DNA of 63,768 nucleotides, the filler included, from Perkinsus chesapeaki ATCC PRA-425 (Eukaryota > Protista > Perkinsozoa), in the NCBI GenBank assembly GCA_013115145.1. It is 10 parts of 10 records of this genome, joined end to end, with 100 filler letters (N's around TTAATTAATTAA, not from the genome) between each part and the next. Parts side by side here need not be neighbours in the genome. Positions count along the whole stretch, not along the records: positions 55,247 to 60,343 come from JAAPAO010001192.1; 9 more parts are not named here. One strand, given 5' to 3'. The first letter of the stretch is position 1. Every line of letters begins with the position of its first letter. Below the pieces are notes generated by a model, which was not told the DNA's origin, did not search any database, and saw only the letters and a program-made list of their open reading frames with translations. The position numbers were made by a program, and so were the translations under genes. This document shows positions 2,521 to 60,443 of this stretch, piece after piece.

Positions 2521-2820
2521 TTTTTCAAAAAAGCACATTTTCTGGGATGCTTTATTTACGAAAGGTTAAGCTTCTCTAGATACTAAAATATATTACAAAT
2601 TGAATGTAGAGTTAGCCCAACCGGTGGGCCCCACCGAGATACAAAAGACAGATATAAGCGTAAGAGTAAAACAGCGTAACCAACTCAACAGAACTTCAAT
2701 TCGAGACGATCGCAAAACATTCTGCGTCGACAACTCGCGCGCGCCATACTTAACTCGGGAAACTGACGCCACTCGGAAACTGCTACTCCTACTGGTAACA
2801 CTGCACTTCACTCAGACTCG

Positions 2821-2920
2821 NNNNNNNNNNNNNNNNNNNNNNNNNNNNNNNNNNNNNNNNNNNNTTAATTAATTAANNNNNNNNNNNNNNNNNNNNNNNN
2901 NNNNNNNNNNNNNNNNNNNN
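2821..2920. other. Assembly gap pad with TTAATTAATTAA six-frame-stop linker (artefact)
   Basis: The same N-TTAATTAATTAA-N pad occurs near 2866, 22297, 40142, 41409, 51431, 53918, 55191, 60388 and 62578. Plain N gaps at 28517-28613 and 58866-58962. Confidence 0.95.
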
Positions 2921-3249
2921 AGCCTAGGTCTAAATCTAAGGCTAAAGCTAAACGTTCTGCGTCTTCGGTTGAACGCGCTTCCGATGTTTCTCCGTTTGAT
3001 CACAGGATTGATCCTCGTCTCGCTCCGTCTACAGCTGACGACATCTTTGTCCCCGTTCACAATCACGACCCTATACTACCCTCACAGCGCAACCACTATC
3101 TCGCTCGCCCAGTGCATTATATATTTCGGCGTTTTTGATACGTGGGTTCGAATCCTAGGGAAGACATCGAAGTGTTACTTGGATATCAATCACCATAGGT
3201 TCAATGAGAAATAACAATTAGTTTCAAGATTGCTTTCTGAGCTCACAAA

Positions 3250-4625: not shown

Positions 4626-4712
4626 AGCTAGGATACTTCGTGCCTATCTCAGGCAGTAGAATCTGGGGCAAGAACCGTCCCAAGGTCGATTCGGCATGAA
4701 ACACCATTAACC

Positions 4713-6558
4713 ATGTCCTCTACCCCTAAAGGCGTTCCATCCGCCGCGGAGCTTCTCGCCCGAAAACGTCGGTGCCTCTCCCGCAGCTTCTCATGGACGT
4801 CTTTATCAGTAGGAACACTTAAACACTATTCCACACCAGTTCGATTCCTGGATGGGGCATCTTGTCGTGTGTGGGGAAGAATGAACACCAGTAAACCATC
4901 GATGATGAAAGAAATGTGGGGGTGGAATTCTGTATTCCCAGAAGCTCCATGGTTTGGCGATTCTATGGCTCCCAGCGCTTTGCTAATGGTGGTCTTGTCC
5001 TAGTCTGATGGCAACTGTGTTTAATGTGTTAGGGAAGCGATGGACGATGGAAACAGTTTGGGAATACTTGTGGAGGAGGATGGGCCAAACATTTCAGCAT
5101 GAACAACAAACGACTTTGGTCTTGATTCACGTTGACATTGTCGTCGTATTTGCGTTATCGCCCCCCTCTTCGATCAGCCTTTACTATTTATCTCATGCCA
5201 TTTCCAATAAAGAACGTTCACAAACGGGGTTCGCCTTCGAGGGCGCAATGTGTCCCTTTGTTTGCCATCGTACCATTTCTGCAATCATCAGAAGCAACTG
5301 CCCTCTATATAGCGTTCGGCGAACCGCTGGACTCGATGCCTCTGATACATCTGGTGGATCTTAGAGGGCTCACCGGGCCGCCGACATGGAGCGAGTTGCA
5401 GCTCCTTCAGACGTTGGCAATTGGCGAGGATCAGCTCGTTCATTTCAACTACTTCACTTTGCCGAATCTGAGGTCAATTACGATCTTTCCGACCCTCGTG
5501 AACTGTCCTGGGCTCGACCTCTGCCCTCTGATCAGTCGCTTCCTCACCCCTAGGTTGCAGACTCTCAGCCTTAAAGGCTTCTACTGTGACACATTGATAG
5601 GCGCCATAGAGAGTGTGGAGGAATGGCCGCCGCAAGTTGACAAGCTGATTCTCTCGCATGATGGCACTTCTTGCCAAGGATCCTCCTGGAACCTTTGGGG
5701 GGTGATCTCATTCGCCTTCCCCGGGCTCAGGAAGATAAGCGCTGTTCCATCGGGGACATGGAGACGTGTTAATACCGATTGCCAATTGTTAATGACGAAA
5801 AGACAGATTGAGTTTATGCCTAGAATTTCTGAAGTCGAAGTTAAAGGTGACAGATGCTTACTCCATCATCACTTCATCATTCATCAGGTCCACCACCGGC
5901 TTTTACAATCGATAACTCAACTCTTCAATATCGTCTGACTAGTCTTAGCATTACCGATTGCCCTATATCGCCCACCCTCATCAACAGCCTTTGGGAGGCA
6001 GCCAGCTTTCCCTATCTTCGGAGGTCAGATAAGTGAATCGATTTCCTTTATTAATGTCTTTTAGACTTTCCCTTCTGGGACCGACGTACGGCACTGTGGG
6101 CTCTGCTTTGGCATTGAAAATAACGCAGAGAGGATTCTTGCCTGCTTTGGAGAATCTGTAAGGAATGTTGTTGGAATCCAGTAGCTATGTGGTCGATTGG
6201 TCAGATCCCTTCATTTGACCAAGTGGAAGGAACTGGAGGGTGCGCGGCGTCACTGTGGCGTCCATACCGACATCGGAATATCTTTCTTGAGAATTCTACT
6301 CAAATTATTTGAAGCAGGCCAGATACCTCCGCATCACAGGCTTCGCGTAGAATTTCGTGGCGCGTGAGATTTGCATCATCCTCTTTACAGGTTGTCGTTA
6401 CCACTGCGGTGAAGTGTCCCACCGACGGCGCTGCCCTCCTCCACGAGCGACTCGGGAATGGCATCCTGCCGAAATTGAGAGTTTTAAAAATAAAGTCAGA
6501 AGATGGCCGTTATCGGATATTCGATAATACCAGCCAGAGCAGCAACGCTGTCTTGTAA
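4713..6558 (+). CDS. F-box-like/leucine-rich-repeat protein, multi-exon
   Basis: LRR-like units (LPNLRSITI, TPRLQTLSL, FPGLRKIS, FPYLRR, LPKLRVLKI). Removing a 31-nt intron near 4810 gives LPQLLMDVFIIRFLD, which resembles an F-box start. Start codon unresolved. Confidence 0.5.
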
Positions 6559-6718: not shown

Positions 6719-7897
6719 ATGGGCGTGAGTTCGACCCCCAGTAAGGACATTTTCATGACCTTCCTCGCGCACCCCTCAGGAACGGGCTTCAGTGTAGATG
6801 CCACTTTTCAAAACCTCTTCCCAACAGTCGGTGGTATTAGCAGTATTCATTTTAAACCATCTCACGAGATCACTTTCTATAGTGATGATGAGAAGCCTAA
6901 TACATGTTACTACACTGGTGTAATAGATAGAGAAGGTAAGGTTGAAGTGATATTGGTGGATCCATATGAAATGGAAGATAATCGTTGTAAAGAACTCACC
7001 GCCTCATACGGAGATAACTTCCTTAATAATGGAGTTACTCTCGATATGAAATCTATGGATGCTATGATACTCGGTAAAAATGGCAAAACAGATATTTACA
7101 CCATCACGGAGGGGCGGTCGGATGAAGGCTATTGTATGGGACCTGATAACAGTGGTAGATTGGACTGTACTTTCAAAAGGGTTGAAGGACCGGCAAATGA
7201 AGTATCCTTCCATCTTAACGGTAAAGTCGATATATTCAATGATCGCCAAGAGCGTGTTCGATGCGATTACATCGTTAAAGACAAGACTGATGTTAAGCTG
7301 ACCTGTCCTGAGCCGACGAAAGGAATGCGCTGCCTGGTCGAGTCTTTAACGGAAAATGTGGAATTAAGAAGGAAAGTTGGATCTTTGGAGCTCACAGCTG
7401 AGGTAAGTAATGAACTTTGCTGGACAGCAGACACACACGTCTACAAGCAAGTTGAATGGGAGAAAGCATTCTTTGATTTCAATCTCGAGAGGGTCCGAGA
7501 TGGCCTTACACTGGATGCAACTTTCTCCGCCGATGACAGTAGTCAAACAATTGCTACAGTGGCAATGAAGGACAACGGCGACATCGAATTTGCTGGGGGC
7601 AAAAAGAAGTGCAAATGTAAGTACAGAGCAAACTTCAACAGTGAAAGAGGCAACATTGATATCGAACTATTGAAGGCAAACAGCAAAGATTGTCAGTCTC
7701 TACTGGATGGCTCCAACAAATCGAAGGGGAGAGGCGGTTTCCTCCGCAGTACCTTGAGGCGGAGTAAGAAAAGTGAATATCACCCACGCATTGTGATCGT
7801 TAATAAAGCCATGAGAAGAATGGAGCTTCACATGGATAATGGCTTAACCGAAAGTCTTAGTTCAGTGAATGGGAGTAAAGCTTATATTAAAGACTAG
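6719..7897 (+). CDS. Lineage-specific beta-rich protein, paralog A (probably secreted)
   Basis: Intronless 392-aa ORF with clear paralogs at 10876-11762 and 11763-13043. A hydrophobic leader (MIIYLIIVLK, ATG 6688) lies one base out of frame. Confidence 0.75.
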   Translation: MGVSSTPSKDIFMTFLAHPSGTGFSVDATFQNLFPTVGGISSIHFKPSHEITFYSDDEKPNTCYYTGVIDREGKVEVILVDPYEMEDNRCKELTASYGDNFLNNGVTLDMKSMDAMILGKNGKTDIYTITEGRSDEGYCMGPDNSGRLDCTFKRVEGPANEVSFHLNGKVDIFNDRQERVRCDYIVKDKTDVKLTCPEPTKGMRCLVESLTENVELRRKVGSLELTAEVSNELCWTADTHVYKQVEWEKAFFDFNLERVRDGLTLDATFSADDSSQTIATVAMKDNGDIEFAGGKKKCKCKYRANFNSERGNIDIELLKANSKDCQSLLDGSNKSKGRGGFLRSTLRRSKKSEYHPRIVIVNKAMRRMELHMDNGLTESLSSVNGSKAYIKD

Positions 7898-8764
7898 TGT
7901 TGTTTGGTAATGTATCAAGATGATGTTCTATCCATGACTAATGATGATGTCAATGATGTTGTGTGATTGATGATGGTATCCTTTGTGTTAGAGTGTGGTT
8001 GATGCAGTGGAAAGTATCGAAGCGGAGTCGAATTACAAATACTAACGTTATTTGGTTCGCTATCAGTGGTATGCGGAGGGATAGAGGACACCTTCGTGGA
8101 AAGCAGGGCTGAAAGGATGAGCAATTTTGGTATTTAAAGCAACTTATTTTACACCTTTGCGGATCACCTCGAGATTGAACTCTGTCTCCGCAAACGAAAG
8201 CTAGGTTGATTCGAGAATGTCCAAACGTGTCCAACGCAAGCGTAAACGGCTCAAGCGGGATGAGTATGGCTGGTAACCAGATTAGTGGCCAGCTACTAGT
8301 TACAAGCTACTGTCATGTGCTTACTCTCGTCACCTTTGATCTGGAGGCGACGTAATTCCACATTTACCACTCTCAAGAGTTGACACAACACGAGACGATT
8401 TGAATATGTCGGGTTCGTATCTTACCAAGCAAAGTCGAAATACAGCATTGCCAAGGAAGGCTTTGCTATCGCCCGAAACCCTCAAATGGCTTGACTCTTC
8501 ACTACAAATAGGTCTGCCTGAGAAATACTCTGTCCGCAGGGGAAAGAAAGTTTGGAAAAATACAAAGTTGGTTTATAGTTTTAGTGTTCATTTGTGGAAG
8601 GTTCACGAACAGCTTCCATAACTGAAATAAATAAATGATTGGTTATCAAAGATAAGGGCAAGAACCACAGCACCAGCACCAATACTGAGCGTGTGGGTAT
8701 GAAAGGGTAATCAAAGATTACTAATCCTCAAGCCGGCATGAACGACTGAAATTGATCAGCGCGG

Positions 8765-9181
8765 TCATGCCGAAGGTGGAGGTAGCTTTGGCAGTATCAT
8801 CACGTAGTCACTAATGTTAGTAGATAGCTCATCCTTGGACGCATCATATACGAACATAGTAAAAGGCTTCTCTCCCAGCTTTAGAGGGAGGTGAGGGCAG
8901 ACGATAGAGAGCTCCCGCAGGGCATTCTCGTAAATTGGTAACTTCTGCATATCATCTGGTAGACTCATTTGACCTGTAGATTCATCGTAGTCGTAGAGGA
9001 AACCGGCCAAATAGGGATCAGCGAGATCACACCTGTATAAGATGGAAACGCGTGGTAATTGAACCAATAGGGCGATCACAAAGTCTATGGGGCCCACGTA
9101 ACCTCTATAGGAACCGTCTGGTTTGGTACCACAAGCAATCATACCCAAAGCAGTGATGACAAAAGTGTGGCAGTTGATCAT
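8765..9181 (-). CDS. Small secreted hypothetical protein (PxGxYxG family)
   Basis: 138-aa intronless ORF with a signal-like N-terminus followed by KPDGSYRG. Same layout as 19186-19584 and 19647-20060. Confidence 0.7.
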   Translation of the reverse strand: MINCHTFVITALGMIACGTKPDGSYRGYVGPIDFVIALLVQLPRVSILYRCDLADPYLAGFLYDYDESTGQMSLPDDMQKLPIYENALRELSIVCPHLPLKLGEKPFTMFVYDASKDELSTNISDYVMILPKLPPPSA

Positions 9182-9976
9182 TTTATTGAATATATCCTAA
9201 CAAGCTCACAATGGTACTGCCTATCAATGAGCCCCTCCGAGCAAAACACCTCTGACTATGAAGTTAGTGCGAGCGAATCATCTAATCTAAATTCCATGGT
9301 TTCCATATAGCTTGATAGAAATACCACTAGTGCCGAGAAGTTGTGGGCCACAACATCCACAATGCTGATCTCATTGCCTTCAAACGCCGCGAGAGAATCA
9401 GCGAGTCACCCAGAGAAGGATCAAACATCACGAGGCTTCACGGAAATGCTTAGCCAAATATGAATCATGTTTGGCTAAGCATTTCCGAATCATTTTCAAT
9501 CATGTTACATGATAAGGGAGACAAGCATTCTGTCTACTGCCAGCCCAGCTGCTGAGGCGTTTATTAGCAAGTAACGCTTACCAAGCTGTATTGCGTGCGA
9601 GCGAGAGGGAAACCTATGGGCACTCGATCTCACGTCTTCAGACTCCTTGTTTCCCACAATTGCTGCCTATAGAGGATAATAAGTGCTTAAACCTTTGCGA
9701 CCTTGATCGGCCAGCATAGACAGAAATTCCACGTCGCACCTGGTCACCGCTCGTAGTCGTTCGGGGTGGTGCGGTGATTCACTCGAAGAAAATGCCGTGT
9801 CGCCAGCTGAGAATGAGCTGGAGCCCACGAGGCGCAGACTCTGATAACTTGAGACAAGTAAGCAGTAGCGGTTCGCTGAGCCGGGCTCAAGGAGCATGAG
9901 CTGTTGGTAAGTTTATAATTCAAGTGTTGAAATTCACTCGTTGAGAATTCTAGCGAGTAGATATTATTTCTACATA

Positions 9977-10211
9977 GAGCTTCACATGGATAATGGCTTA
10001 ACCGAAAGTCTTAGTTCAGTGAATGGGAGTAAAGCTTATATTAAAGACTAGTGTTGTTTGGTAATGTATCAACTTGATGTTTTGTCCATTATTGATGATG
10101 ATGTCAATGATGTTGTGTGACTGATGATGATATCCTTTGTGTTAGAGTGTGGTTGATGCAGTGGAAAGTATCGAAGCGGAGTCGAATTATAAATACTAAC
10201 GTTATTTGGTT
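9977..10211 (+). repeat. Direct duplicate of the last 24 codons and 3' UTR of paralog A
   Basis: 235 bp nearly identical to 7823-8057. Confidence 0.9.
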
Positions 10212-10875
10212 ATATCCTAGCCTACTGTATGGTGCTTCAGTGTGATGCTTCGATGGATGGTAACATCTACTTTGTCGGGCTGATGAGTCCGCTTTGGTGT
10301 AGTGACGCGATACATAGATCTTCTATGGTAGGAGAAGATCGCTGAGGTTTGTTTGTATGTGGTATTCGTTACGCTCCATCAGTAAGAGCTTCTCTTCATT
10401 ACAACTGACCTCGAAACAATATCTTTCAAAAGGGGGAACTGCCAACGGTATCTTCGATCCGTGACGGCTCCTCGATGCCATCACCTGTCCATTCGTTCTA
10501 TTCCGTACCAAACGGAAGAACCTATCTGCTCGTGAAAAGGGTGGTATTGAGATACCGACCTTAGGCTTCGACCGAAACCCATGATAGAAGCGAGTGAGAA
10601 CAGGTTCTACTGAGGGTGTGCAGATCAGTAAGGCTCTTGTCAATAAGCCTGATTCAATAATAATAGGTAGAGTTCTTGCTTAAAGCGCTCGAATTTCACG
10701 CGATGTTATTGTCATTCATTATCCATGTTGACACTTAAACGCAAAGACCTAACCGGAAGACGACAAAAAACATCATCAATAACATGAATAATAAAGTAAG
10801 CTTTAATGAGTCACCACGGTCAACAGGGCAGATAAAACGTTATTGATAAATATTATCACATCTTATCAAGAAAAA

Positions 10876-11762
10876 TCACTCTTTAATGAAAGCTTTACTC
10901 TTCTTGGCTCTAAGGAGCAGTTCTACTTTCCCTTCACCCATGTGAACCTCAAGTCTCTTTATGGCCCTATTAGCAATTACGAAGCGTACTTTGGGTTTTC
11001 CCTTGTCCATCAGTGATTCACAGTATCTGCTGTAGGGATCCTTCATTTCAATATTGATCGTTCCATTTCCGCTTTCGAAGGTTGCTTTGTATTGGCATTC
11101 GCATGTCCCCTTTTGTCCAACAACTTCCATACTACCATCGACGTTCATCGTAACTGTCGAAATAAGTCGATTTTCCCCTTCCTCTTCTATACCGAATCTT
11201 GCATCCAATGTAACTTCATCTTTTACCCTCTTGAGATTAGAATCGAAGAATGCCTTTTCCCATTGAACTTGCTTATAATAATACTTATTTGATGGCAAAC
11301 CAGGACTGTTACTAGCGGTTTCAGTTATGATCCTTAAAGGCCCTTGGTCGTCTAAGATTCTAACATTCTCTGAAAGGGTTTTCATCAAGAATAGAATGTT
11401 ATCTGGTGGTTCAGGACAGTTTAGCTTGACGCTACCATCGTCCTTAACAGTGTAAGTGCATTTTAAGCACTGCTGCCGTGCACCGAAGATATCAACTTCA
11501 CCGTTACGATGGAAAGATAATTCACTTCTCATCCCTCCGGTGGATTCGAAAGTGCAGTCCAATCTCTTATTGTTGTCGAACCCCATGCAGTAGCCTTCAT
11601 TCGAATATGGAGTGGTGGCAACAAATCTACTTGTCATACCTGCTGCACCATTGACGATTGTGACATCCAGAGGGTCGCTGAGTGTATTGACGGTGTAGCC
11701 ACCCGTGAGAAAGCCATTTCCGTAGATCTTGGTGAGTTCTTTACAACGATTCTTTCTCGCTT
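10876..11762 (-). pseudogene. Paralog C of the 6719 family, 5'-truncated
   Basis: Shares NRCKELT, RLDCTF, YKQVxWEKAFFD, CxCxYxAxF and SKAFIKE. Lacks the first ~85 codons of paralog A and has no ATG before the homologous region. Confidence 0.7.
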
Positions 11763-13043
11763 CCCAGTAAAGACATTTCAATGAGCTTCCTCACAGACTA
11801 CACGAATCCAACCATGCCCTTGACTGGCTTCACTCTGGACATGACTTTTCAAAACCTCTTCCCAGCAGTCGGTGGTATTAGCAGTATTCATTTTAAACCA
11901 TCTCACGACTCGTGAGATGGTTTAAAATGAATACTCGTGAGTCACGATATCACTTTCTATAGTGATGATGAGAAGCCTAATACATGTTACTACACTGGTG
12001 TGATAGATAGAGAAGGTAAGGTTAAAGTTATATTGGTGGATCCATATGAAATGGAAGATAATCGTTGTAAAGAACTCACCGCCTCATACGGAGATAACTT
12101 CCTCAATAATGGAGTTACACTCGATATGAAATCGAAGACGGCCATAATCACCGATGATGAAGGTCATCAGGACAGTTATGATATGAGTCATACCGGGTCT
12201 GGTCCCGAACCAGGCTATTGCGTGGGAATCAATGACAATGGCAGATTAGAATGCACTTTAAGATGTACTATGGGCATTGTAATCGAGATATCTTTGCATC
12301 TCAACGGTAAAGTCGATATATTCAATGACCGCCAAGAGCGTGTTCGATGCGATTACATCGTTAAAGACAAGACTGATGTTAAGCTGACCTGTCCAACAAT
12401 CCGAAATACGTTCGGTATTTTAGCAAAGACTCAATTCGTGGATACAAGAGGGCCTCTTGAGATGTTGACTGCGATTACGGACTCACGTGACCATGAGCAA
12501 TGGTTCATATACAAGCAAATTAAATGGGAAAAGGCATTCTTCGATTACAACTTGGAAAGAGTCCACCAAAAGGTGGCCTTAGATGCAATCTTCAGTAGTT
12601 CAAATAAGAATAGTGAAAGGAGGATTGCAACTGTAAAGATGGATACAGATCGTGGTATCGAAATTGTTGGGGACAGGAGGAAGTGTAAATGTCAATACAA
12701 AGCCATCTTCGATAGTGAAAGCGGGGCGATCAATATTGATCTAAAAAGCGCCATTAGCCCAGATTGTCAGACGATTCTACGTGGTAGTACTTCAGGCAGC
12801 ACTATTAGTCTGGCTAAGCCCCAGGTAAGCGAGGCCCGGAGTGGTTTGGGCACCCTCGGTAAACAAATGAAAGGTGCTTTCCAAAGTACTCTAAGCCTCG
12901 CGAGGGACTTCAAGGTTACAAGGAAGTCAGTCATGGTGATCACTAATAGAGCCCTCAAAAGACTGATGACTTACTTCGATGACGGGAATGCCGAAGTGCT
13001 CGAATCAACGGGCAAGAATAGTAAAGCTTTCATTAAAGAGTGA
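11763..13043 (+). pseudogene. Paralog B of the 6719 family, 5'-truncated, with a 39-nt fold-back insertion
   Basis: Homology starts at PSKDI (11763). The insertion at 11909-11947 adds in-frame TGA stops. ORF 11937..13043 is intact downstream. Could be functional from ATG 11781 if 11912-11941 is spliced. Confidence 0.7.
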
Positions 13044-13536
13044 TTTTTCTTGATAAGATGTGATAATATTTATCAATAACGTTTTATCTGCCCTGTTGAC
13101 CGTGGTGACTCATTAAAGCTTATTTTATTATTCATGTGGTTGATGATGTTTTGTTATGTTGTCTTCCGCCGGTTATGTCTTTGCGTTTAAGTGTCAGCAT
13201 GGCTTTTCTGGTGGTTGAGTTGCTCCCTTCAACAACCCACTTTATAGCCTGTCATCGACTGCCTCTCATTCGAACATATACACCTTATAACCCGAATAAT
13301 ACTGGAAGGGTGCTTATTAAGGATTTGTTAAGGGGCTTAAGGTTGAGATGTAGGAGAGCTACACTGGTGGAAGAGAATATAAAGGGGATCATTGAGGGGC
13401 ATGAAGTCCCTTCATGGGTGAATAAAATGTATGTTGCGCGTCATAAGTTTAATGTCTACTTGCTTTAATATCCTTTTTTACTATTGAACACAAAGCCGGT
13501 GATGTAAAAAGTGAGAAGTTAGTAAAATGAATACCC

Positions 13537-16193
13537 TCAAAGCTCATCATCCCGAGTCCCTTCTTGTACAACTGTAGCATCACCAGTGATGAGCACGCAA
13601 GCTCCCTGAGATTGATGATGGTGATGATGATCGTCAAGACTTGCTGTTGTTGACAAGATACAGAAGCAGCACTGGTTTACCTCCTTGCCATCTCCTACAG
13701 AATTCATCATAAATCCGCATATCTTGGCAGCAGCTTTGTCGGCTACTTCAACGTCTTTGAAGGATAATCTGAAAGCAACAGGAATGCAACTGACCGGCGG
13801 CGTGAAGTAAAAACATGCTAAAGTTTTTTCTACTAGCTTTCGCTAAATGGCACTTTCATAGAAGCGCTGAAAAGTACGTAATTGTGATGATGATCATGAC
13901 AATATAATATCATCACGACGCTGGCTCAAGAATACATACCGCGACGACTACAATAGGACTTTTATGAGGTTAGAAGAGACGGGCTAACCTGAGTTGTGGG
14001 ATATCCTTCTCTTTAATCTCTCGCGTGTCGATCAAGCCTGATGAAGCTGATTCTGCTGGACATTCCAATCGACTTCTCACTTAATTTCTTTCCATCATTA
14101 TCGCACCACCACAAGGAGTATCCATTCGCCTCATCCCTCCTCTCCTCCTCCCTATCAGCCCTATCAATCGCGATAACCCCGGTGAACCGTCGAGTATTCT
14201 CTTCAAGGCCCCCCTTGATGATTGATATCCCTCGCGGTAGCCCAGAGGGACGGGATCGGTCGTGAATCGGCCATATTGCGCAGGCGGTGGTCAACTCCCC
14301 TTTAGATGGATGCTCACCTAAAGCCGCAGCAGAAGGATGATGATGATGATGAGGAGGAGGAGGAGACCGTCAGCATCTCCAATAAGATAACGTATTTCTG
14401 CATCAATCGATCTCACACTTTGTATAGCACTATTAATTCATTCTCCTTCGCCCAATCATCTGCCGATCAGAAAGGTCAGAAAACGGCGTAGAAATGTCGG
14501 CGGTGAGGATCGAACCCACGTTCCCACTCACCGTCGTCCTGATCATGCATGCTAAATGCTAGGATGCTTTCTGCACCCTTTTTTATAGCCATCGATTTGC
14601 CAAGGTCATACTGTGCCCCTATCGGCCCTTTTGCTCGGGCACGGCCGATTCTGCTGCTGTCGGGCAGGGCCTCGCAACTGGTGGAACTTCTCCCCCAATA
14701 AAGAGTGTAAAAATCCACAGACGGCTGGGAATCTGCCGAGTGTGCCGGGAGGATCTTCATAACACCGCCAAGCTCATCGACTTCAGGCGAAGTATCCTCT
14801 AGCTCGAGACCCTAAGATACAAAATAGGTCAAGTTGAACGCAACTAGCTTTAATGACCTGTGGCGGGTATCCAGGAACAGCCCAATCTTCGATGGACACC
14901 GTGGCAAAGTGTACATTATCAGACTCGCCAAAAGCGTCATTGGCCGGGACGGCGGTGATCTTGCTGGCTTCCTCGGGAATTCTGATTCCTTCAGGGAGAG
15001 TCTCTAACAGTCTCGTGGCTCGCATTTTAGGATTCGGAATTTTAAATATCGGATGCTGGCTTAGTTTGGTGTTATTTTTATCCAAAAAGTAAACGGCGAA
15101 AAACTCGGCATCACCAAATACTGCGGTGGAGTTTACCTGAGTGTGGTGGTATCTTAGGTTGACACGTGGAAGATACGCGGAAGGTTAGATAGATACCTCA
15201 ATGGTCCCACTTATAAATCCCTTTCTCGGGTCAACATCTGTGAAGTTAATCTGCGAGACTTCTTCTTGTGGCTTGCCGTGACATCTTCCATCAGGTCCAG
15301 TAAAAAGCTTCCCTAAATCCCTTTGCCAGGATTCGAACCCACGACCTTCTGCTTACCAGAACAATCGTCTGCGCAACTGTCCACACATTTGTCATCTCCA
15401 ACGCAATACGCCTTCTTTTGTAGGCGACAAGTGACTAGACTGTAATGTGGTGTTGGTAGGCCAGCCAAACTCTCCTCATGTAGCTCAGCAAAGTCCATCC
15501 AATAATGCATATTAGTAACCTTCCGGTCCTTCGAGACCAGCAGACGGGGCCATTTACCTGACAAAAGAAGAAGAAGACGATGAGAAGACGGCCGTTCGAA
15601 CGGCGGATGAGCACTTCGCCTGTTGGCTTTCACGAGAGTTGCGGAAAGTTTTCCAACTGAAGCCATCGCCCAGCGGCTGGCAGAAGGGTCGACGTTGTCA
15701 AAAAAACTCAGATGAAGGGTGTACTTGTGTTTTTTACCTGATAATCTTGAGGTTGAGCATGCATGATACAATATAGCTCACCTGAATGTTCTCCAACCGC
15801 CGTAACATGTATGTCATTTTCCGTTATATTAACCTCCGGATTTCGAATGTCGAGTGCTCCAGGTGCATTCCATCGACGTGTGAATTTAACATTTATAAAA
15901 ATAGCAGTATCGTTTTGCGCCCACTGGAATGCCGGCGCCACTTTCTGTGGTTTGAAGTAGTTTTGGTCGAGACTCCGGACTAGCTCGTCTGCTTTAGCTT
16001 TGATTTCTCTGGTCGCCTTTCGGACCGACGGCCCGTAAAAATCGACTCGTCCTTGTTGTGATTGTTGCTCGTGATCCAGTTTAATTGCAGCTAAAGCCGC
16101 TGACCACCTGAAAGGATTTTGGCGGGAAAGTCGGTATGAGAATATTGTTAGCAATATAGTAAAGCATATTATTATTCCCAATAATATATCCAA
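13537..16193 (-). CDS. Membrane-anchored CS (p23/HSP20-like) domain protein with Cys-rich linker and repeated beta-sandwich-like domains
   Basis: N-terminal hydrophobic helix. CS-domain motifs PAFQWAQND, YTLHLSFFDNVDP, WPRLL and NMHYWMD. Introns 15313-15356 and 14460-14531 keep the frame. Repeated motifs FTDVDPRKGFISG..YTLYWG and FTGVIAI..YSLWW. Confidence 0.65.
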
Positions 16194-16271
16194 CCGCGAG
16201 ACGGCGAACTATTCATCTTAATCAAAAAATGCATCCGAATAGCACATGTGTCCTGGGGCACCCTGTCAGCA

Positions 16272-17742
16272 TTACCATTGTTTTTTAATCAACTCCTCCA
16301 TCTGATCACCATTGATCACATCCCGTATCGATCGACCAGTCTTCCCCGCTTCCTCTATCTCACCAAGCATTGCTGCCTCATCCGTCAAAGCTGCTGCTGC
16401 TGCTGCCAGCAGTGGGCAGAGCAAAAGCACGAGTTGCCCAATCGGTGGCATAAAACAGGAAAACTCGCCATTGGCTCCATTAAGACTGCTAATAACGCAA
16501 CAATCGGGGAAGTCGTGAAACGGCGACAGTGGAAGTATACAATAGTTAATCTGCGGGGTGGGGGACGCTCACCGATGATGCGTCCACTTCGATGATGCCT
16601 TCTGAGACGCAAACACGCTTGCCCATGACCCCTTCGCGGAGGTAGGGCTGGGAGACCGCCTACTCTCGCGAGCATCAGGAGGCTCTGCCATGCAGAGACC
16701 TGAACGAGAAATACCTTAGGTCGAAGCATGCAAGATTCAAAACAGGCCTTACTCCTCTGGATTTGAGGATCAATTCTACCATACGATAATCCTGGCCAAT
16801 CACCCTCCCCAAGAGCTTTCCATTCCCTCTCCGTCGGTCGCCGAATAACAACATCATCGTCCTGCTTCGCTCCGCTGAGTTTTTCCGCATTTCTAGCATC
16901 AGTAAACTCGACTGCAGCTGCTCCCCCAAATTCTCCTGTATCAAAGTCGCCCACAATCATCCTTATACTCCTCGTTGGCCCTGCCATCGCATGTAAACGT
17001 GAACGCAGGGAGCCTTCGGTCGTCGAGGCAGGCAGGTTAGTTATCACTCTCACTCTGGTGATGTTATGATCATGGAGATCTCCAAGGGCAGTCGGGACAC
17101 CAACGAAGATTGGTCGATCTGGCGGTGGCAAACAGGAAGCTATCAACTGCTATGCAAGTATCCACAGAAGCAGAATCAATAAGCGCGTCAAGGGGTAAAT
17201 GGGGGAAGATTGCCCCTTTTTTACAAGAACAGGAAGGACTAATGCACGTGGTGAAGGAGCGTAGGGAGCCTTACTGAGGAGGAGGCTACGCCCACTTCTT
17301 CATCCTCATCACCATGATCCGTCGCTCCGTATGGCAAATCGGCAACAGGAAAACCGCGAAGCTCCATCTTGACCAACTTACTAATGATGATCTCCTCCTC
17401 AGCTTCTCCCGATTCTGTAATAAAATCATCCCTTCTTTTTCGACGGCCAGATTGCGGAGTTGACGCTATAACACTGGGAGTGACAATTTTGCTAAGTACA
17501 AAGACCTCGTGGAAGAGAGGATCGAAAACAGACAATAATGGCTTCTCCGGCATTCCCTGAATAAGTCGATTAAAAGCCCCCCCCGCCTGGTGACGGCAAG
17601 ACAGTACCTCCTTCAACCCTGAGCTCTCATCAGTATTATTACTGTCATCATCGGCAGCAGCAGCAGCATCTGGGGTGAGATCCGCATAAAGATCATCCAT
17701 ATATCCATCAAAGCTACATCCCATATATGAATTTAATAACAC
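16272..17742 (-). CDS. RRM-domain RNA-binding protein, multi-exon
   Basis: ITNLPASTTEGSL (RNP2-like) and GEFGGAAAVEF (RNP1-like). The last exon reads open to TAA at 16272. The 5' boundary is uncertain. Confidence 0.65.
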
Positions 17743-18013
17743 AATAGTAAATAAAGAGGACCAGCAAATGTAATAGGGCCTTCATCTAGACACTGTACAA
17801 ACGGGAACCAACGCCTCCGCCTCCGACACCAGTAATAGGCCCTCCTCTCAGCAGCCGCCGCAGGAGCCTTTAGTAGGTAACAATGGTTAGGAATACTCTT
17901 CTGTTAGATATATAAAAGGACAAGGAGGAGGAGGAGGATGAATATATTAAGAAAATTGCTTGAAGTTTGATAGGATACGATAAATGCGATGAAGCTGCCA
18001 ATAGCTCTTGTTG

Positions 18014-19024
18014 TTAGTCTGATAATGAACGAACAAGCTTTGGTCTCCGTGCCCACATATGAAGGACACTTGAAGCTTGACACTGTTCGACCATTCGCAT
18101 TGCATCCATTCTAACATCATTAACTCGCACTATAATATCGCCTTTCTGTAGCTTTTGGCCTGGAGGAGCCTTCCTATTCCAGAGATCTACCGAACCTTCG
18201 GGAGTAACTCTGTCAACTACTAACCAACGAGGATCGCTGTGATCAACATCAATGCCCAAACGGACGCCAGGGATCCTCTGAAAAAGTACATCTCATTACA
18301 TTAACCTATTGTGTATCTTGTAAGGTTGAAGCTAAGATATTACCTGAATATCTATCTTGAAGCAATTAGATTCTATATCTTCATCCGATACCCCAACCCT
18401 CTCATCAGCAACATCATCAGCGCTATCATCTTCGAAGCTGCTGTTTTCATCTTCGCTTGTCTGAGATATTAACTCTTTATTGACAAGATCATTACCAACG
18501 AGAATCGCGGCATGATAAACTCTAAAGGCCATATTAAATACAACAGTGACAATATGGAATAGCCTAGCGACCAGTGAAGGGGAGGACGACTGCACATTAA
18601 CGAACCCCTCCAAGATAATATATCCCTCCCATTTTACTACATTAACAACTGCCTTGGCTGCTACTACTGACGGTGATGATGTCTCTTCGAAGTGACCTAG
18701 AAAATATCTTTCGAAACGGAAGATATTTCATAGGTTACCTTGGTGACCTTCTTCCTCTTCCTTGGGATGATCTATTGGTGATGCTGTTGTCGGAGTTGTG
18801 GTGATTGGCTGTTGTTGTTGGGTTAACTTGGGTGTAGCTTCTTGCGTATCATCGACCTTATCAACGGTAACCTCATTTAACCAGTCAGCTGAGTCTGGTC
18901 GCCGACAACATTGATCGAACATGTTGGTGCTGAAGGTCTCTATCCTTGAGACTGCTGAGCTCGACTCTATTGAAGCGAGCGTATTTCCCATTAAAAGAAG
19001 ATAAGTAGAATATGCGCTGATCAC
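18014..19024 (-). CDS. PDZ-domain protein, multi-exon
   Basis: GIDVDHSDPRWLVVDRVTPEGSVDLWN..LQKGDIIVRVND is a PDZ pattern. Acidic and Q/T-rich upstream exons. May continue below 18014. Confidence 0.65.
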
Positions 19025-52548: not shown

Positions 52549-55500
52549 GGTTCTCTGATAGATGCTTTGATTGATACATATTCGCTGATAAAGATAGGCT
52601 TGAAAGAGGGCGAGTATTAAATGACTATTACTCATTATTATGATACCATCAATGAGAATTCAGGAATTATTCACGGAGCCCGTGACGCGCCATGTGTTAC
52701 TGCGTGCTTAAAGACTTAGGTACTCATCAGATCCAGAGTCTGACCCACAGTTACACCGTATACGTTTACTATACGTGTTATATCGTTCACTCGTATACCC
52801 CTGCTACGGCTCATAATAAAACCGCATGAGCCTACTTTCAATTAGTTATTTTCAGTTGGACTATTCTCAATGCCGCTCACGTATCCGCTCTATTCTTCGT
52901 CAACGTGTAAAGGTCTGCTGGCTCTTGCGTGACTCGCTGAGGGGCTCCCCTGGAAAAGGTGGTCTCCATAAAATGGAGAAGTGGTAAGATCTCCAAGGTC
53001 TTCATGGAGGAGAGCTTTTCAGCCTACCTTGAAGGGAGTGGGCCAGTCGGTTCTATTCGTGCTCGTGCGCATCAGCTCGACTTCAAATCTGACAGTCTTA
53101 ATCTGTTAACTCGGCAAGGCTCCTCCGCTCTGTCAGGCCTGGCGCGTCACTTTCTACGAGCTGGTGTCGCGGTATCAGTTGACGAACTCCGGAGAGTAAC
53201 ACAACAAAGGAGCTTGAGCCAGTTGAGGGATATTTCGCAGCAAAATGTCGACAAGCTATCTCTGGAAGAGTGTGTAAAAGCTCGGCATCAACTTGAGTGT
53301 ATGAAGGGCGGGTGGTTCCACACATGAGCATCGAAATAGTTTTCCCGATTTCCGGCAGCGCTTGCGAATGGCTCCGCTGGAGCCTATTATGTCCAAAACT
53401 AATTTCAAGTTATCGGTCAGAAGCAGAATCCTTGCAGGAGAAACATCGCGGAACGAAATGAAAAAGTGATGATGGAAGTTCATAGCCGGATGTACCTGTC
53501 ACGCCTTCTGATGTAACACACGTTGCCCGTTGTTACACGTGTACTTCTGATAGACATGGATCACACGTAAGCAAGTCACGCGCCATAGTGATTATGGCGC
53601 AAGTCAGGCGTTACAGGTTGTTTTGAAGATACTGTAAGGAACTGGTGTTCGTATGAAAGGCAATGCCTTTTATCACTTCAGTCTCGGTTGTGGGCTCCTA
53701 GTAGGAGCCTCCTACTGCTTACGCCGTGAATAATTCACGGTTAATTTTACGGGCACAGACGGTACCGTATCCTCAGTAGCTAAAAAGCCTAGGTGAGGTA
53801 CTCTCGCGACAAGACTTGTAACCGTTCTCTTTCCGCACGTAAACCCTAGTAGGGGTTTACGTGTGTGGCATCCNNNNNNNNNNNNNNNNNNNNNNNNNNN
53901 NNNNNNNNNNNNNNNNNTTAATTAATTAANNNNNNNNNNNNNNNNNNNNNNNNNNNNNNNNNNNNNNNNNNNNAGCGGAGACTCGCTATGAGGGAAATTG
54001 ATCACCTTATCCACATAATCCTCTCAACTAAGATCATCACTTCCAAAATCCCAGTAACTGGTCCCCTGCTGCACCTCGTTATGGATCCGCCCTGTGGTTT
54101 TACGTCTTTCTTCTAACATGCCGCTCGCCTTCGTCTTCTGCCAGCCTTTGACCTGACTCGCTTCCTCGCCCTGGTCGACTTGGGTGTTTCCGACATTAAC
54201 CCAGGTAGGAGGTAAACGGGGGAAAAATGCGGACTGCACAAAGTGAAATACCTTAAGTATTACCAGACACAAACCCACACAACAAAAGGGGTCTAGTTAG
54301 ACCGCTTTCGCTTGCCACCGTCTTTGCCGTCCAGACCACATTAGAAGAGTTAACATGTTGTGACGGAGGGGAGAAACATATTGCTTTGGCCAGGAGAGGG
54401 CATATATTCTCCGGGAACTTCCAACTGACCGAAAGGGGTCTAGAACCTTTACCTTTGCTTTCGCCCTTACCCTTACCCCTTGCTTCACCACTCGCCACTG
54501 GACCGGAATACCACTTGCGGCACGCGAGCTCATTGCCGATATACAACATAGATCAGAGGTCGCGAACTCTTCTGCCCTCGATAGGACGGACACGACCGCC
54601 TCAGTATATGACATATTCTCCTTGGCAGCAAGCTGGTGTGCTAGGACTCCGAGACGGCCACGAAAGTTACGTTCAACCCGAAGACACACCGAATCGCCGG
54701 ACATCATGTACACCTTCGCTAGATAACATACAGTCTGGTCAAAAAAATTGTCCAGCGCCGATCTGAATGTGATGTAGATCGAGTTTGAGGATGAAAATGG
54801 TAGCACTAGATCAGGAGAAATTTGTTGCTCTTTCCATTGGTATACGAATCATTTGCGCACGGGCCCTATCCCCTGAGAGATTAGAATCTTAAAAAATTTC
54901 TGGCGGCCCAACGTGAATTATGAACCTTAATCTCGCATTTCTCCGCGACCTGATCGAATCTGATATCACCCAAGACACCGTTGTAATCAAGATGGCATGC
55001 GCTTTCGATTGGTGCTTGAACCTTTCGGAGCTTTTTGAAACTTCACCAACTCCGGGAGGTTCAAGCACCAATGTTTCATGTGTACCAATCGTTAACATTC
55101 CCCTTTTACCACCGGTGGCATCCACCACAGCTTGCAGCTCAGTTTCNNNNNNNNNNNNNNNNNNNNNNNNNNNNNNNNNNNNNNNNNNNNTTAATTAATT
55201 AANNNNNNNNNNNNNNNNNNNNNNNNNNNNNNNNNNNNNNNNNNNNGGACGGACGCACGCACACGAACGACCGCGCACTGCAATATAAGCTCCGCTCGCT
55301 TCGCTCGCTCCGCAATTAAAAGGCTTCTATTGGTTATAAACGTATGCATGTTTTCTCGTATTTTTTATCGCGGAGCTTGTCAGTGGAAAGTTTATTATAT
55401 AGCATATTATATTGTATATATTTCATAAGAATTTTATGCTAATTTTTGCTTTCTCGGTCTATTAATATATTTTGCGTTGGATTTATTATGTATACTATAT

Positions 55501-55589
55501 ATGCGAGTTCGGCTTTCATCGATTGTATATATTTATGTATCTATTTTTTATATAGCATTGATCGAAATTCACGATCTGACGCTTATCGA

Positions 55590-57689
55590 TTCAATATATG
55601 AATTATAATGCTACGCGGATTTCCTAGCCCATATCTTCCCCCAGTGATATGATTTACCTTCATCAGGTGTCCACTTCCGCACGAATAAATCTCGTAGCCT
55701 CACCCAATCTCTTCTACTCCAAGCTGCTCCCATGAGGTCAAGGTCGCGGTTTACGGCTTTCCATATGTTGGATGGTAGTCGAGGTGTTGCTTTCGCCTTC
55801 TTAGCTCGCTGCTTGGCATGATAATAGCAGCTTATTATCCTCGCATTGCCCCAAACCTCCTTTACAGCATTGTGAAGCGCATCTGAACCATCCATGACCA
55901 CCTCTTCAGGTACAGCTTCGGTGATATCCAAGGCTTCGGCCGCCTGGGTCAACTTACGCAGTGCAAAGGATACTGAGGACGCTGATTCGCTCTTCAAAAG
56001 TACAATTCCCACCGGTTTAGCTACCTCACCATAAGGCAAGGCGCAAACAACTAGGATGACCATCTCGCCGTAAATTATATTGTAGGTCCCGTCGAGCCCA
56101 ACGGTTTTGCAGTTCTTCAAATTGCTCAACATACGAGCACTTGTGAAGACCGCGGCGAAATGGTGCAGTTCCAGTTTGCCATCCTCCTTGGGTAGCTTCT
56201 CACAAAGAACGTCGTCGAGCAATATGCACTTCTCACCTTCCCGAACCACCATTTCAAGATCACCATCAGTCTGGAGTGATGTACCGACCCTTGTGAGGCT
56301 GTCGACCACTGAGGAGAAGGTCTCCTTCAGCTGAGAGGGAACATACCGTAGGCTTTCGATCTGTCTCACAAACATATCAACGCTCAGGCTACCCTTTCCG
56401 TTCTCCACCAGAGATCTGTAAGCTCCCTGTACCTTACTAAACTTCTGGAGGCCTTTCTCGGCTATGAATTGGAGAGTTGAAGGAAGATACTTAGCAGCCA
56501 GATAACGCTCATCAGATTTCTCTCGGAGTTCTTTAAGAGTAGAATCTGGTCGCCGATGCAGCTCTTCTGCCCAGTGATCGCAGACGTCTGGTGGTACATA
56601 TGAGCTTCTGCACGTTTCAGTGCCATATAGGTGTTGGTGATCGCGCCACTCCTGGAGTGTTGCAGGTACCGTTCGCAAAGGGTAGAAGTAACAGCGGCCA
56701 TCAATCATTTTCACATAAACCTCTCTGCATTGGCAAACATGCTCAGGCCACAGGCGCCAGTCTGGGCGTGCTCGCTGAGTTGGTACCTTCCCTTCAATTC
56801 TGGTAGAAATAGATCGTTCGCATTCCAAGACGCATTGCCTTCTCCCATACTTCAGGTGCTGAACGGTCATCCCCTTCACTCTGAAGTGAGGGTTTTTCCC
56901 GAGATATCGCTTCAACACTGGATAAATATGTCCCTTGTAGATGACGAAGGGATCCATGCCATATTTATCATTAGCTGGACCAGGTGGAGGACCTACTGGT
57001 AACTCTTCGTGGAGGCTAACTGCATCGTCCTCTTCATCAGAGTCCTCTTCTTGTGCAGCTTCCTCTACGAGGTTATCCTGAGGAACAGCCTGCTCATCGG
57101 TTTCGTCAGTGCCAGCATAGCTGTGCTCTTCTACGTCGACCCCATTGGCTTCAAGGTGTGGTTCAGGACTAACAGGGAGGCGTGTTTCTTGAGGTGGCTG
57201 TTCACAAGGCTGAGGTTCAAGTGACGAGCGGGAGGGGGCTTGCTCTCTCACCGATTCTTGTATCAGTTGCTCCAAGCGCTCCTCGTCAAACTCATCATGT
57301 GTGAGGTTCAAACATTCATGAAGAGACTGGTAGAACTTCGTCTGGGTGGCCATCGGCGTCTGCGAAATCTTCTGGAACACCGTAGGCCGCATCATGCAGT
57401 ATACCACTGGGTTAGTGAATTGCTTTTGGCAAGAACCGCGGAGTGATGAGAAATGAAGAGTGAGAGCTAACAGCTGGATACGGTCCTCGACCACGGTACC
57501 GAGTTGCTCTATTTTGTTTTCAACTTGCAGGAAATGATCACGAGCCAAGTAGTTTTCATGATCGCTCGGTGGTACCGAATTTGTGTTCAGGCCGTTGCGC
57601 TGTATTGGCTCCGGCATTACTGGCTCCTCATAAGCAAGCCAATTCTGCATCCTGCACAAGGCATCGAAGTCAGCGGCCTCCGGGTCCAT
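55590..57689 (-). mobile_element. Mutator-like (MULE) DDE transposase region
   Basis: VGLDGTY (D1), VVMDGSDALHNAVKEVW (D2), SCYYH (CxxH), and an upstream CxC..HxH finger. After the TAG at 55611 the frame continues HYNSYIES (possible third acidic residue). Confidence 0.88.
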
Positions 57690-59276
57690 GAAGAAGATTG
57701 GCTGTAGGAGGCTTGGGTCCGTGCAGTTCTCTGCGGATGAACGCGGATTTTGGAGCTGTCACCGACTCGGCTCAATATCGTATAGGTAGCACCAGCCAAC
57801 CACGGAGCAGACCAGTAGTCACTTATGCGATTGTCTTGTTCAGGCGGTACTCCTTTGAACGGGAGTTGCACCCATACACCCTGCAGGGTAGCTCCTACGA
57901 TTTTGTGGGCAGTTACCGCTGCGCAAAGAGTGAGTGGGATTTGGTCCCTAGTGAATAGCACGTCCCCCGTAGGTCCATGGACGTCGAAGCGCTGGCGTCT
58001 AAGCGAGACCACAGTCCCTTCACCATCGAACCTCACCTTGACCACTGGTTCCTCACCGTAGAACATTATATCAACTACTTCACCAAGCATACCGTTGGTA
58101 AACCGTTTGGCAGGGTCGTTGACACTAGCCATTACACGGCAGCCTTTCTTCAGCTGTATGGTAGATTTGAAGCCCATTGCGTCGACGTCAGCAAATGAAA
58201 AGCTGCTCCCTAATGGGCGGCATACGGTATCTGTAGCTCTCACTGTGTATTCTTCTCCTGGAAGGGCTTCCAGATGTTGCTTGTTGTACTCATCTGCTTG
58301 GCGGTTGGTGAGGCGAATAGTGGTGTGAGGGAACCTGAGGTGACAGCCGGTTTCTAATAGAAGCTTTCTATAATTCTGGTCAACGAGACGGTATATCCCA
58401 CCTCGGTGGTCTGGCTCCTCCATCGCGATCACGGATGGTGTTCAAGATCTTCATAGAGCTTTCCGAGAATTGAGGTAATCCAGCTCTGATTCTTGGTGCA
58501 CTTCGTATTTCAGCTAGGAGCTTCAAGTAGGGACTGTCTTGCCCGCGATGAAACGACGTAAGGTACATGACCACCGGCCTCATCGCTCGCCAAGAGTCAG
58601 CCTTCCAGCACGGCCCCGTCGGATACTCCGTGGGCGGGTATGCGGGGGACTTGTCGTACAACTCCACGCGTCCAATCTGGCAAGGGTCACCACTGAGGAT
58701 TACTGGCACTCCTCCAAATGGCAAGCTTGACGAGCTGGGCATGACGCTGGCGATCGCGCTTGAGAGAGAGTCGAGGACCACATCGTGTAAGGCAACAACC
58801 TCGTCGATAATCACCACGACCTGCCTCGCGTTGTCGAAGATCTTCTTGTTCTTCAGATATGCGACNNNNNNNNNNNNNNNNNNNNNNNNNNNNNNNNNNN
58901 NNNNNNNNNNNNNNNNNNNNNNNNNNNNNNNNNNNNNNNNNNNNNNNNNNNNNNNNNNNNNNACTATCCGTCTGCGCAACTCGTCCTGGCAGCGCATGTA
59001 TGAGTTGTCGCCAACGAGGCCAGACCATGCGAAGCTTAGGCCACAGAATGCCATCACAGTCTCACCTCCACGAAGCTGTCTCGCTGCTGTACCCGTCCAC
59101 GTTACGACCACGGGGAAGCAGTTTGGGGGAAGAGAGTCAATGAGCGAGTTAAGGAGATATGTTTTTCATGTTCCCGCGAAACCTGTTATATACGTGTAGC
59201 AGTTTCCAGGAGCTCCTTCACCAATTTTCTCCAAAATGTAGTCTTGAACCCGCTTCTGCTTATGGTCAAGGGCCAT
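57617..59276 (-). pseudogene. Pif1-family (SF1B) DNA helicase, disrupted, directly 5' of the MULE transposase
   Basis: ITGFAGT-stop-KT (Walker A), TGTAARQLRGGET, IIDE, FGGVPVILSGDPCQ, TNRQADEYN, QIPLTLCAAVTAHKIVGATL, GATYTILSRV. One nonsense codon and two frame changes. Confidence 0.92.
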
Positions 59277-59559
59277 AGATTTGCTGTGTAACAACGCGTT
59301 TACTAATGCTGCGAGGAGTATGGCTATGTCTTGCCAGCCTAGTGGTTGTCCTGAATATTTGCCTTTCATTTTTTGAAACGGTCGCGCGTCACCGGCCGTT
59401 TCATGCGCATGCTTCGGTGTGGTCGTAGAATGTCTCGTTATTGTTCGAAAAGTGCCGAGTTCTCGTCCCAGTGCCGTCAATTTCTTTTGCCGAGATAGAG
59501 GGGAACAACTAGTGAAACTGCTAACGTCACTGCAACTGTTGTAGACTACAACTTGTAGT

Positions 59560-60342
59560 ACAACAACTCCAGCTACCCCTCAAGCACTCTTACCACAACA
59601 ACTCTTACCACAACAACTCCTACTACAACTCTTTCCCCCAACAACTCTTCCCCCCCCTACAACTCTTACCACAACAACTCCTAATACAACTCTTTCCCCC
59701 AACAACTCTTATCACAACAACTCTTTCCCCCAACAACTCTTTCCCCCAACAACTCTTCCCCCCCCTACAACTCTTACCACAACAACTCCTACTACAACTC
59801 TTTCCCCCAACAACTCTTATCACAACAACTCTTTCCCCCAACAACTCTTCCCCCCTACAACTCTTACCAGAACAAATCTTACCACAACAACTCTTACCAC
59901 AACGACTATAACCACAACAAATCTTACCACAACAAATCTTACCACAACAACTCTTACCACAACAACTCTTACCACAACAAACCTTACCAGAACAACTCTT
60001 ACCACAACAACTCTTACCACAACAACTCTTACCACAACAACTCTTACCACAACAACTCTTTCCCCCAACAACTCTTCCCCCCCTACAACTCTTACCAGAA
60101 CAACTCTTACCACAACAACTCCTACTACAACTCTTTTCCCCAACAACTCTTTCCCCCAACAACTCTTCCCCCCCCTACAACTCTTACCAGAACAACTCTT
60201 ACCACAACAACTCCTACTACAACTCTTTCCCCCAACAACTCTTATCACAACAGCTCTTACCACAGCAACTCTTACCAGAACAACTCTCACCACAACAACT
60301 CCTACTACAACTCTTTCCGCCAACACCTCTAACCCCAACAAT
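59560..60342 (+). repeat. Degenerate ~15-bp tandem array (acaacaactcttacc / acaactctttccccc), truncated by gap
   Basis: About 50 variant units with higher-order blocks. Confidence 0.95.
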
Positions 60343-60443
60343 TNNNNNNNNNNNNNNNNNNNNNNNNNNNNNNNNNNNNNNNNNNNNTTAATTAATTAAN
60401 NNNNNNNNNNNNNNNNNNNNNNNNNNNNNNNNNNNNNNNNNNN

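Follow-up and report, generated by a model that had tools for sequence, protein, structure and literature searches.

A Pif1 helicase joined to a Mutator-like transposase in Perkinsus: a decayed locus that probably belongs to a family of large transposons

The window analysed in this work is the whole 63,768-nt stretch of DNA from Perkinsus chesapeaki ATCC PRA-425 (assembly GCA_013115145.1), made of ten parts joined end to end. Its positions 55247-60343 are one entire contig of 5,097 bp (JAAPAO010001192.1), which on the minus strand carries a Pif1 helicase followed by the transposase of a Mutator-like element (MULE). The original prediction, made from the bare sequence, was that Pif1 motifs I-VI run straight into a MULE transposase, and Pfam matches together with motif mapping bear this out. 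Two stretches of the minus strand match the PIF1 family PF05970, namely 58380-58865 (29.1 bits, cut-off 25.9) and 58963-59165, and the MULE family PF10551 is matched by an open reading frame (ORF) of 692 aa at 55611-57689 on the same strand (39 bits, cut-off 27.6). This ORF is a 100% match to the NCBI model P0001, a "hypothetical protein, partial" of 1036 aa. P0001 carries both PF05970 and PF10551, as does its P. olseni homologue P0002.

The N-terminal half of the helicase is encoded by exon 1 (58402-59276, minus strand, as are all coding features below), with its ATG at 59274-59276, and was delimited by the Pfam match, the motif map and the homologous ORFs of three related loci (L001, L004 and L010). 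It contains the Walker A motif (59160-59183), motif Ia (59073-59111), motif II with its DE pair (58797-58820) and motif III with the Pif1-signature region (58665-58700). The Walker A glycine is replaced by a TGA codon (59166-59168), giving GFAGT*KT in place of the GFAGTGKT of intact homologues; this lesion had been noticed beforehand and is also present in a Logan contig from a public run. The same contig closes the 97-N assembly gap at 58866-58962 by joining 58863 to 58964 through one intervening letter. The gap is spurious: its flanks abut in frame, reading ..RRRIAAYLKNKK.. with zero residues missing, and the homologues are contiguous at this point (RRM-VAYLRGKK). Exon 1 ends at an intron of 67 nt (58335-58401) with GT..AG borders, which splits an Arg codon after ..GGARPP and has the same position in three species, with a length that varies from about 40 nt in P. 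olseni to about 170 nt in P. marinus. Thus, the break near 58400, first read as either a frame change or a 31-nt intron, is indeed an intron, but a longer and conserved one, and not a lesion.

Exon 2 begins with the C-terminal half of the helicase (57726-58334), recognised by the motif map and a weak SH3_13 match. Along it lie the motif IV region FPHTTIRLTN (58304-58333), an SH3-like 2B insert (58118-58153), motif V (57884-57922) and motif VI, YTILSRVG (57761-57784). A frameshift at 57726-57730 separates HPQR from NCTDPS; it had been taken for an AG dinucleotide slip, but by comparison with the HPLRN-C/T of the homologues the window is one base short. Immediately after it comes the conserved tail that follows motif VI (57663-57725, ..DPSLLQPIFFMDPEAADFD..), which bridges the helicase to the transposase half and was defined by an alignment of 15 further sequences and the environmental protein P0120 described below. 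The start Met of the 692-aa ORF falls within this tail, as had been proposed, and the tail is conserved throughout the 15-sequence alignment.

The transposase half starts with a linker (56967-57662), in which a helical-looking conserved block, NPVVYCMMRP (57384-57413), precedes a variable acidic stretch. It is followed by a Cys/His-rich region (56631-56966) with the elements RRQCVLEC, RPDWRLWPEHVC and W-R-x-H-x-H and with invariant C, W and H columns, presumed to be a DNA-binding zinc module upstream of the core and matched by zero Pfam families. Of the finger originally written as CxC..HxH, the second Cys is not conserved in the homologues. The MULE catalytic core (55809-56102; PF10551 at ORF residues 530-627) has invariant D, D, C and H columns, with the first catalytic D in VGLDGTYN (56079-56102), the second in VVMDGSDA (55878-55901) and the CxxH motif in SCYYH (55809-55832). 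The reading frame then meets a TAG stop (55611-55613), and beyond it lies NSYIES (55587-55604), so that the stop and the remnant together occupy 55587-55613; the stop had been noticed, although two codons and not seven separate it from NSYIES. This hexapeptide is a remnant of the motif bearing the third catalytic residue (E), TNNxVERFN in intact copies. Homology stops just past it, with about 300 C-terminal aa including the SWIM finger gone, and tblastn with the C-terminal exon gave zero matches in the window.

The Logan re-assembly has no differing letters over 55291-59600, and the recurrence of the TGA and of the frameshift in it means that they are not errors of the deposited assembly, with the proviso that the Logan reads probably come from the same sample. 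The window copy is dead: its Walker A contains a stop, its reading frame is shifted and its 3' part is missing.

Related loci in three Perkinsus species carry the same two halves in one reading frame. ORFs that cross the junction without interruption, taking in motifs IV to VI, the linker and the complete MULE core, are found at four of them: L001 of P. olseni (1968-4757, 929 aa), L004 of P. marinus (9275-12088, 937 aa), L006 of P. olseni (7977-10859, 960 aa) and L010, a second locus of P. chesapeaki (2360-4942, 860 aa). Upstream of each of the four ORFs there is a helicase N-half ORF with an intact Walker A, and downstream an exon with the E motif and the SWIM finger. In these full-length copies Walker A, motif II and motif VI are all intact. 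The junction is kept in the 15 further aligned sequences, where YTxLSRVG is followed by ..IRVxPLRN.. and then by ..PIFFMDPxAxxFDxxC. The catalytic D, D, C and H columns are invariant across the family, the E lies within TNNxVERFN in the four intact copies, and a SWIM-type CxCx(n)CxH, deleted from the window copy, is present in L004, L006, L010 and P0018.

Annotated proteins are in line with this arrangement. The full-length P. chesapeaki model P0195 has 1485 aa, with PIF1 at residues 5-171 (PF05970, 61.9 bits) and MULE at residues 1022-1121. PF10551 scores 30-42 bits in P0005, P0006, P0007, P0018 and P0195, and 21.5 bits, under the cut-off of 27.6, in P0009. Among 1.84 billion representatives, an exhaustive profile-free search returned 38 clusters at E<1e-30, and all the named ones that were looked up are from Perkinsus; P. 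chesapeaki alone has at least eight distinct gene models. Judging from the sequences of these copies, the family has a single gene with two or three short introns, predicted to encode one polypeptide of about 1,450-1,500 aa that would comprise, from N to C terminus, a Pif1 superfamily 1B (SF1B) helicase, the linker, the Cys/His DNA-binding region, the MULE DDE core with CxxH and the SWIM finger. The four loci support the ancestral Pif1-MULE ORF that had been postulated; its size, put at about 1,200 aa, was too small.

In L006, about 1.2 kb (6749-7977) lie between the helicase N-half ORF and the ORF that follows, and some 50 codons of the motif IV region could not be located. The interval may be an insertion or a longer intron, and this copy may be non-intact despite the near-perfect inverted repeats that will be described for it.

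Another explanation for the window would be chance adjacency or a nested insertion, in which an unrelated Pif1 gene or a Helitron fragment came to lie beside a MULE and the read-through is accidental. The halves are in different frames in the window and the locus is degenerate, and the P. marinus annotation includes a 695-aa protein, P0003, that would be MULE-only, all of which this explanation would accommodate. However, P0003 is a truncated gene model begun at a Met inside the helicase tail, and its ORF runs upstream without stops into the helicase. Moreover, the terminal inverted repeats (TIRs) and target site duplications (TSDs) presented below enclose both halves, and no element terminus lies between helicase and transposase in any copy; a terminus there was one of the findings that the original prediction had named as fatal to a fusion. 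The junction lies within single ORFs at four loci besides the window and recurs in the 15 further sequences. This refutes chance adjacency, which we regard as scarcely credible. The Pif1-MULE fusion is ancestral and conserved, with no nested insertion.

Comparison of the domain trees leads to the same view. Trees of the helicase C-half and of the zinc finger plus MULE core recover the same two supported pairs, which are the only supported ones, with zero conflict. The fusion helicases of Perkinsus form one clade with 100% support in the Shimodaira-Hasegawa-like approximate likelihood ratio test (SH-aLRT), with two deep subclades and a long stem, and this clade is not nested in fungal PIF1, bacterial Pif1-like or Helitron helicases. 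Among PDB sequences, the best matches are human and yeast PIF1 (E 4e-11 to 3e-30), with the Helitron protein Helraiser far weaker. Membership of the Pif1 family is accordingly indicated by PF05970, by motifs I-VI and by PIF1 proteins as the closest solved relatives. As anticipated from the absence of HUH motifs, Pfam detected no HUH Rep or Helitron_like_N domain in the window pieces or in the full-length homologues, a further point against a Helitron fragment at this site.

The ends of the element were found in relatives of the window copy. In P. chesapeaki, locus L005 on a 71.8-kb contig has 115-bp TIRs, 97-98% identical (5558-5672 and 12798-12911), flanked by a perfect 9-bp direct repeat, CCTTCACAC, which delimit an element of 7,354 bp. 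In P. olseni, L006 on a 241-kb contig has TIRs of about 570 bp, 99% identical, a 9-bp TSD, CTGTTAAAG, and an element length of 15,034 bp; its position is directly downstream of a host gene, and tandem arrays occur in its interior. A GC-rich hairpin motif about 75 nt from the element end and the terminal sequence itself are both conserved, and a TIR profile built from three ends identified properly oriented termini in L004, L006, L008 and L009, which represent three species. TIRs with TSDs of 9-11 bp had been expected, and the 9-bp duplications of L005 and L006 agree with that expectation. As first thought, the family, with TIRs, TSDs and no Rep, is a DNA transposon and not a Helitron.

At L004, a 272-nt inverted pair (4445-4716 and 14860-15131, 99.6% identical) was considered as a candidate for the TIRs and rejected, since no TSD accompanies it, the repeat occurs a third time and the outer ~70 nt are missing from the left arm. 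Owing to this truncation the boundaries of the copy are undefined, although its right arm does represent a real terminus of the family. The inner part of the pair includes a stretch resembling a tRNA T-arm (..GGTTCAAACCCC..). The right end of the element also lies within a 721-bp segment duplicated at 100% identity (14997-15717 and 17946-18666), whose copies flank a tandem array of 126-nt period (15818-17323); this could be a local duplication or an assembly artefact.

The L005 lineage is represented in P. marinus by L003, with 78-81% nucleotide identity and unrelated, non-syntenic flanks. L003 contains a 1.45-kb Pif1-MULE fragment flanked by direct repeats (1-370 and 9152-9521, 98%; 3948-4892 and 12733-13665, 86%), which suggests that the fragment is surrounded either by a duplicated segment or by repeats of another family.

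The L005-L003 pair made it possible to estimate the ratio of nonsynonymous to synonymous substitutions (dN/dS) across the protein. At a dS of ~0.62, the helicase gave a dN/dS of 0.13 and the MULE core one of 0.16, against 0.39 for the linker that joins them. Between the window copy and its closest P. marinus relative, a fragment, the helicase C-half gave a dN/dS of 0.10 at a dS of 0.93, which indicates that the window copy died recently relative to its history. The linker ranges from 0.29 to 0.39 across both comparisons. The helicase and transposase halves are both under purifying selection and are co-diverging.

Strong purifying selection on both domains over a long divergence is also what would be seen if these genes were a domesticated host family, acting for example in programmed DNA rearrangement or repair, with the window as a dead paralogue. 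The low copy number, the highly divergent lineages and the several copies without recognisable TIR pairs fit such a scenario, and domesticated MULEs have a precedent in another alveolate, the ciliate Oxytricha (PMC3558436). Two copies, however, retain TIRs of 97-99% identity and perfect 9-bp TSDs, the TIR ends are conserved between species, and the L005 lineage is non-syntenic. Moreover, there are many truncated or broken copies, as transposon decay predicts, besides the eight or more gene models in P. chesapeaki. We consider domestication of the whole family to be quite unlikely.

The same ratios bear on whether the helicase is mere cargo of a mobile family, a host or bacterial Pif1-like gene captured once in the manner of Pack-MULEs and with no role in transposition. 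Capture of host gene fragments is known for MULEs (survey PMC6446971), a related MULE, P0156, has an N-terminal OTU protease instead of the helicase, and L005 has a TSD yet a truncated helicase. Captured fragments, though, normally decay, and here the helicase is in frame in every lineage with a dN/dS of 0.10-0.13, not above that of the DDE core, and the full-length copies keep Walker A, motif II and motif VI intact. The distant environmental protein P0120 also repeats the same domain order. Thus, a passenger helicase is unlikely as well.

Repeats are found at both ends of the window contig. Upstream of the helicase lies a tandem array (59586-60311, minus strand) found by Tandem Repeats Finder and GC skew, with a 15-nt unit inside a 108-nt higher-order repeat; its coding strand is G/T-rich, with C nearly absent and a GC skew of ~0.95. 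The Logan contig has one additional unit inserted at 59585, and the 15-nt array is therefore either mis-assembled or variable in length. Similar arrays sit just 5' of the helicase start in all the related loci (L001, L004, L006 and L010), and in intact copies (L004, L006 and L010) the ORF begins at the helicase, immediately after the array. As the array lies inside the TIRs in L006, that of the window is probably internal to the transposon too. The idea that these arrays are G-quadruplex substrates of Pif1 was dropped, with zero canonical G-quadruplex motifs on either strand in the window and in the same four loci.

At the opposite side, the AT-rich stretch 55305-55586 (31-35% GC) is dissimilar to the family; it represents the flank of the element or else unrelated DNA that replaced the truncated 3' part. 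The contig ends in a high-copy short repeat outside the transposon (55247-55304), with a word depth of ~3069 against 159 for the remaining contig. This repeat is dispersed, being common to at least 30 other contigs of the run with both flanks differing, and probably explains the assembly break at the contig end.

Taken together, these data make it very probable that the window holds a recently inactivated, 3'-truncated copy of a Perkinsus family of large (7-15 kb) transposons, which belongs to the Mutator superfamily and encodes a Pif1-MULE fusion. Several points weigh against this interpretation. An inverted-repeat search and the TIR profile found no TIR, TSD or family terminus in the window contig, so that the membership of the window copy rests on protein and gene-structure homology. 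The word depth points to about 1-2 copies of the window sequence, a crude measure that is inadequate as a copy number. Of the six loci whose flanks could be used, only two have both a TIR pair and a TSD: L008 and L009 have a single recognisable end each, seen through the TIR profile, plain inverted-repeat searches of L008, L009, L010 and the window recovered no TIRs, and the inverted pair of L004 lacks a TSD. In L005, which does bear a TSD, the helicase is 5'-truncated right beside the left TIR, as expected for an internal deletion. The copies are few and old, with 36-58% aa identity between lineages, any recent mobility is presumptive and some copies could be domesticated. Finally, no RNA run was listed, a single helicase-transposase transcript is a prediction, and a role of the helicase in transposition is something that we infer.

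With these reservations, a mechanism can be proposed for the Pif1-MULE transposon. The DDE domain would cut at the TIRs and insert with a 9-bp stagger, like that of other MULEs, and the helicase would act in cis on the element's own DNA. In break-induced replication, cellular Pif1 promotes D-loop extension by Pol-delta, and a copy-out intermediate has been proposed for IS256, a group of bacterial relatives of MULEs. The role that we prefer for the helicase, with somewhat less than even confidence, would be long-tract displacement synthesis of the Pif1/Pol-delta type. Such synthesis might restore the 7-15 kb donor after excision or resolve an IS256-like copy-out intermediate, and in either case transposition would be effectively replicative. 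The main alternative, which seems possible to us at a lower level of confidence, is that the helicase melts the long TIRs with their GC-rich hairpin motifs and so aids transpososome assembly.

Evidence from outside Perkinsus comes mainly from P0120, a protein of a Joint Genome Institute (JGI) metagenome. It is a single ORF of 1168 aa in which a complete PIF1 helicase is followed by UvrD_C_2 and MULE, the domain order also seen in Perkinsus. Its identity to the Perkinsus proteins is 23-28% in both halves; it forms an unresolved long branch in the tree and has zero close relatives, and either common descent or an independent fusion is possible. Two metagenome scans, one with P0120 and the other with the family alignment as query, found nothing. 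Two contigs of the public run SRR12548988 carry the Pif1-MULE architecture. We tentatively entertain, as a doubtful extension of these results, that Pif1-MULEs are a distinct and old DDE lineage in which the SF1B helicase is obligatory for transposition and, by driving displacement synthesis, would make a cut-and-paste enzyme transpose replicatively, convergent with the RepHel protein of Helitrons and extending beyond Perkinsus, as P0120 hints.

In addition, the proteins P0156/P0017 (JGI and NCBI) combine a Perkinsus-related MULE transposase with an N-terminal OTU cysteine protease and no helicase there. This MULE clade thus seems prone to N-terminal fusions with accessory domains.

Eukaryotic DDE transposons are generally thought to depend on host replication and repair factors. 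To our knowledge, only few DDE lineages, AcademH and KolobokH, carry a helicase of their own, and we know the Pif1 helicase otherwise as a hallmark of rolling-circle Helitrons. A Pif1-MULE kept under selection shows that transposons working by a different mechanism acquired Pif1 on their own, and it offers a testable handle on the old question of how replicative, non-excising transposition is achieved by Mutator. There is a practical side as well, since these genes are annotated in Perkinsus as "ATP-dependent DNA helicase", "SWIM-type domain-containing protein" or hypothetical, often in split gene models, and in studies of these parasites of shellfish they ought to be treated as transposons and masked.

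The proteins are public and automatically named, and the helicase-fused MULE is an undescribed architecture in the literature searched. No description of a Pif1-MULE was found there; Repbase and Dfam lay outside that search, and prior cataloguing in them is possible. An earlier paper reported 21 MULE-domain proteins in P. marinus with no mention of a helicase, and the main survey of MULE diversity (PMC6446971) mentions neither a helicase nor alveolates.

Among known systems, the family is closest in its transposase to MULE/MuDR elements, which are recognised by TIRs with TSDs of 8-11 bp (typically 9 bp) and in which a SWIM finger is common but not universal. It has in common with them the MULE core (D, D, CxxH, E), a C-terminal SWIM finger, long TIRs (115-570 bp), 9-bp TSDs and subterminal or internal tandem repeats, and differs from them in the complete N-terminal Pif1 helicase of the same polypeptide. 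With the RepHel of Helitrons it shares a Pif1-family SF1B helicase fused to a transposon protein, as well as GC-rich hairpins near the ends. However, the Perkinsus family has no HUH domain, its helicase is N-terminal and not C-terminal, and that helicase forms its own clade, nearer to cellular PIF1 than to Helraiser; moreover, the TIRs and 9-bp TSDs of Perkinsus are both absent from Helitrons, which insert between A and T. AcademH and KolobokH also pair a DDE transposase with a helicase and are a precedent for helicase recruitment by TIR transposons, but the likeness is functional only, since they join Academ or Kolobok transposases to an SF2 or RecQ helicase located downstream, whereas in Perkinsus a MULE has an SF1B Pif1 upstream. 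As for cellular PIF1 proteins, the SF1B motifs, the signature-like PFGG..GD.CQL and the SH3-like 2B insert are held in common, while the identity to human PIF1 and to yeast Pif1/Rrm3 is ~30% and the Perkinsus protein extends past the C-terminal tail into the transposase.

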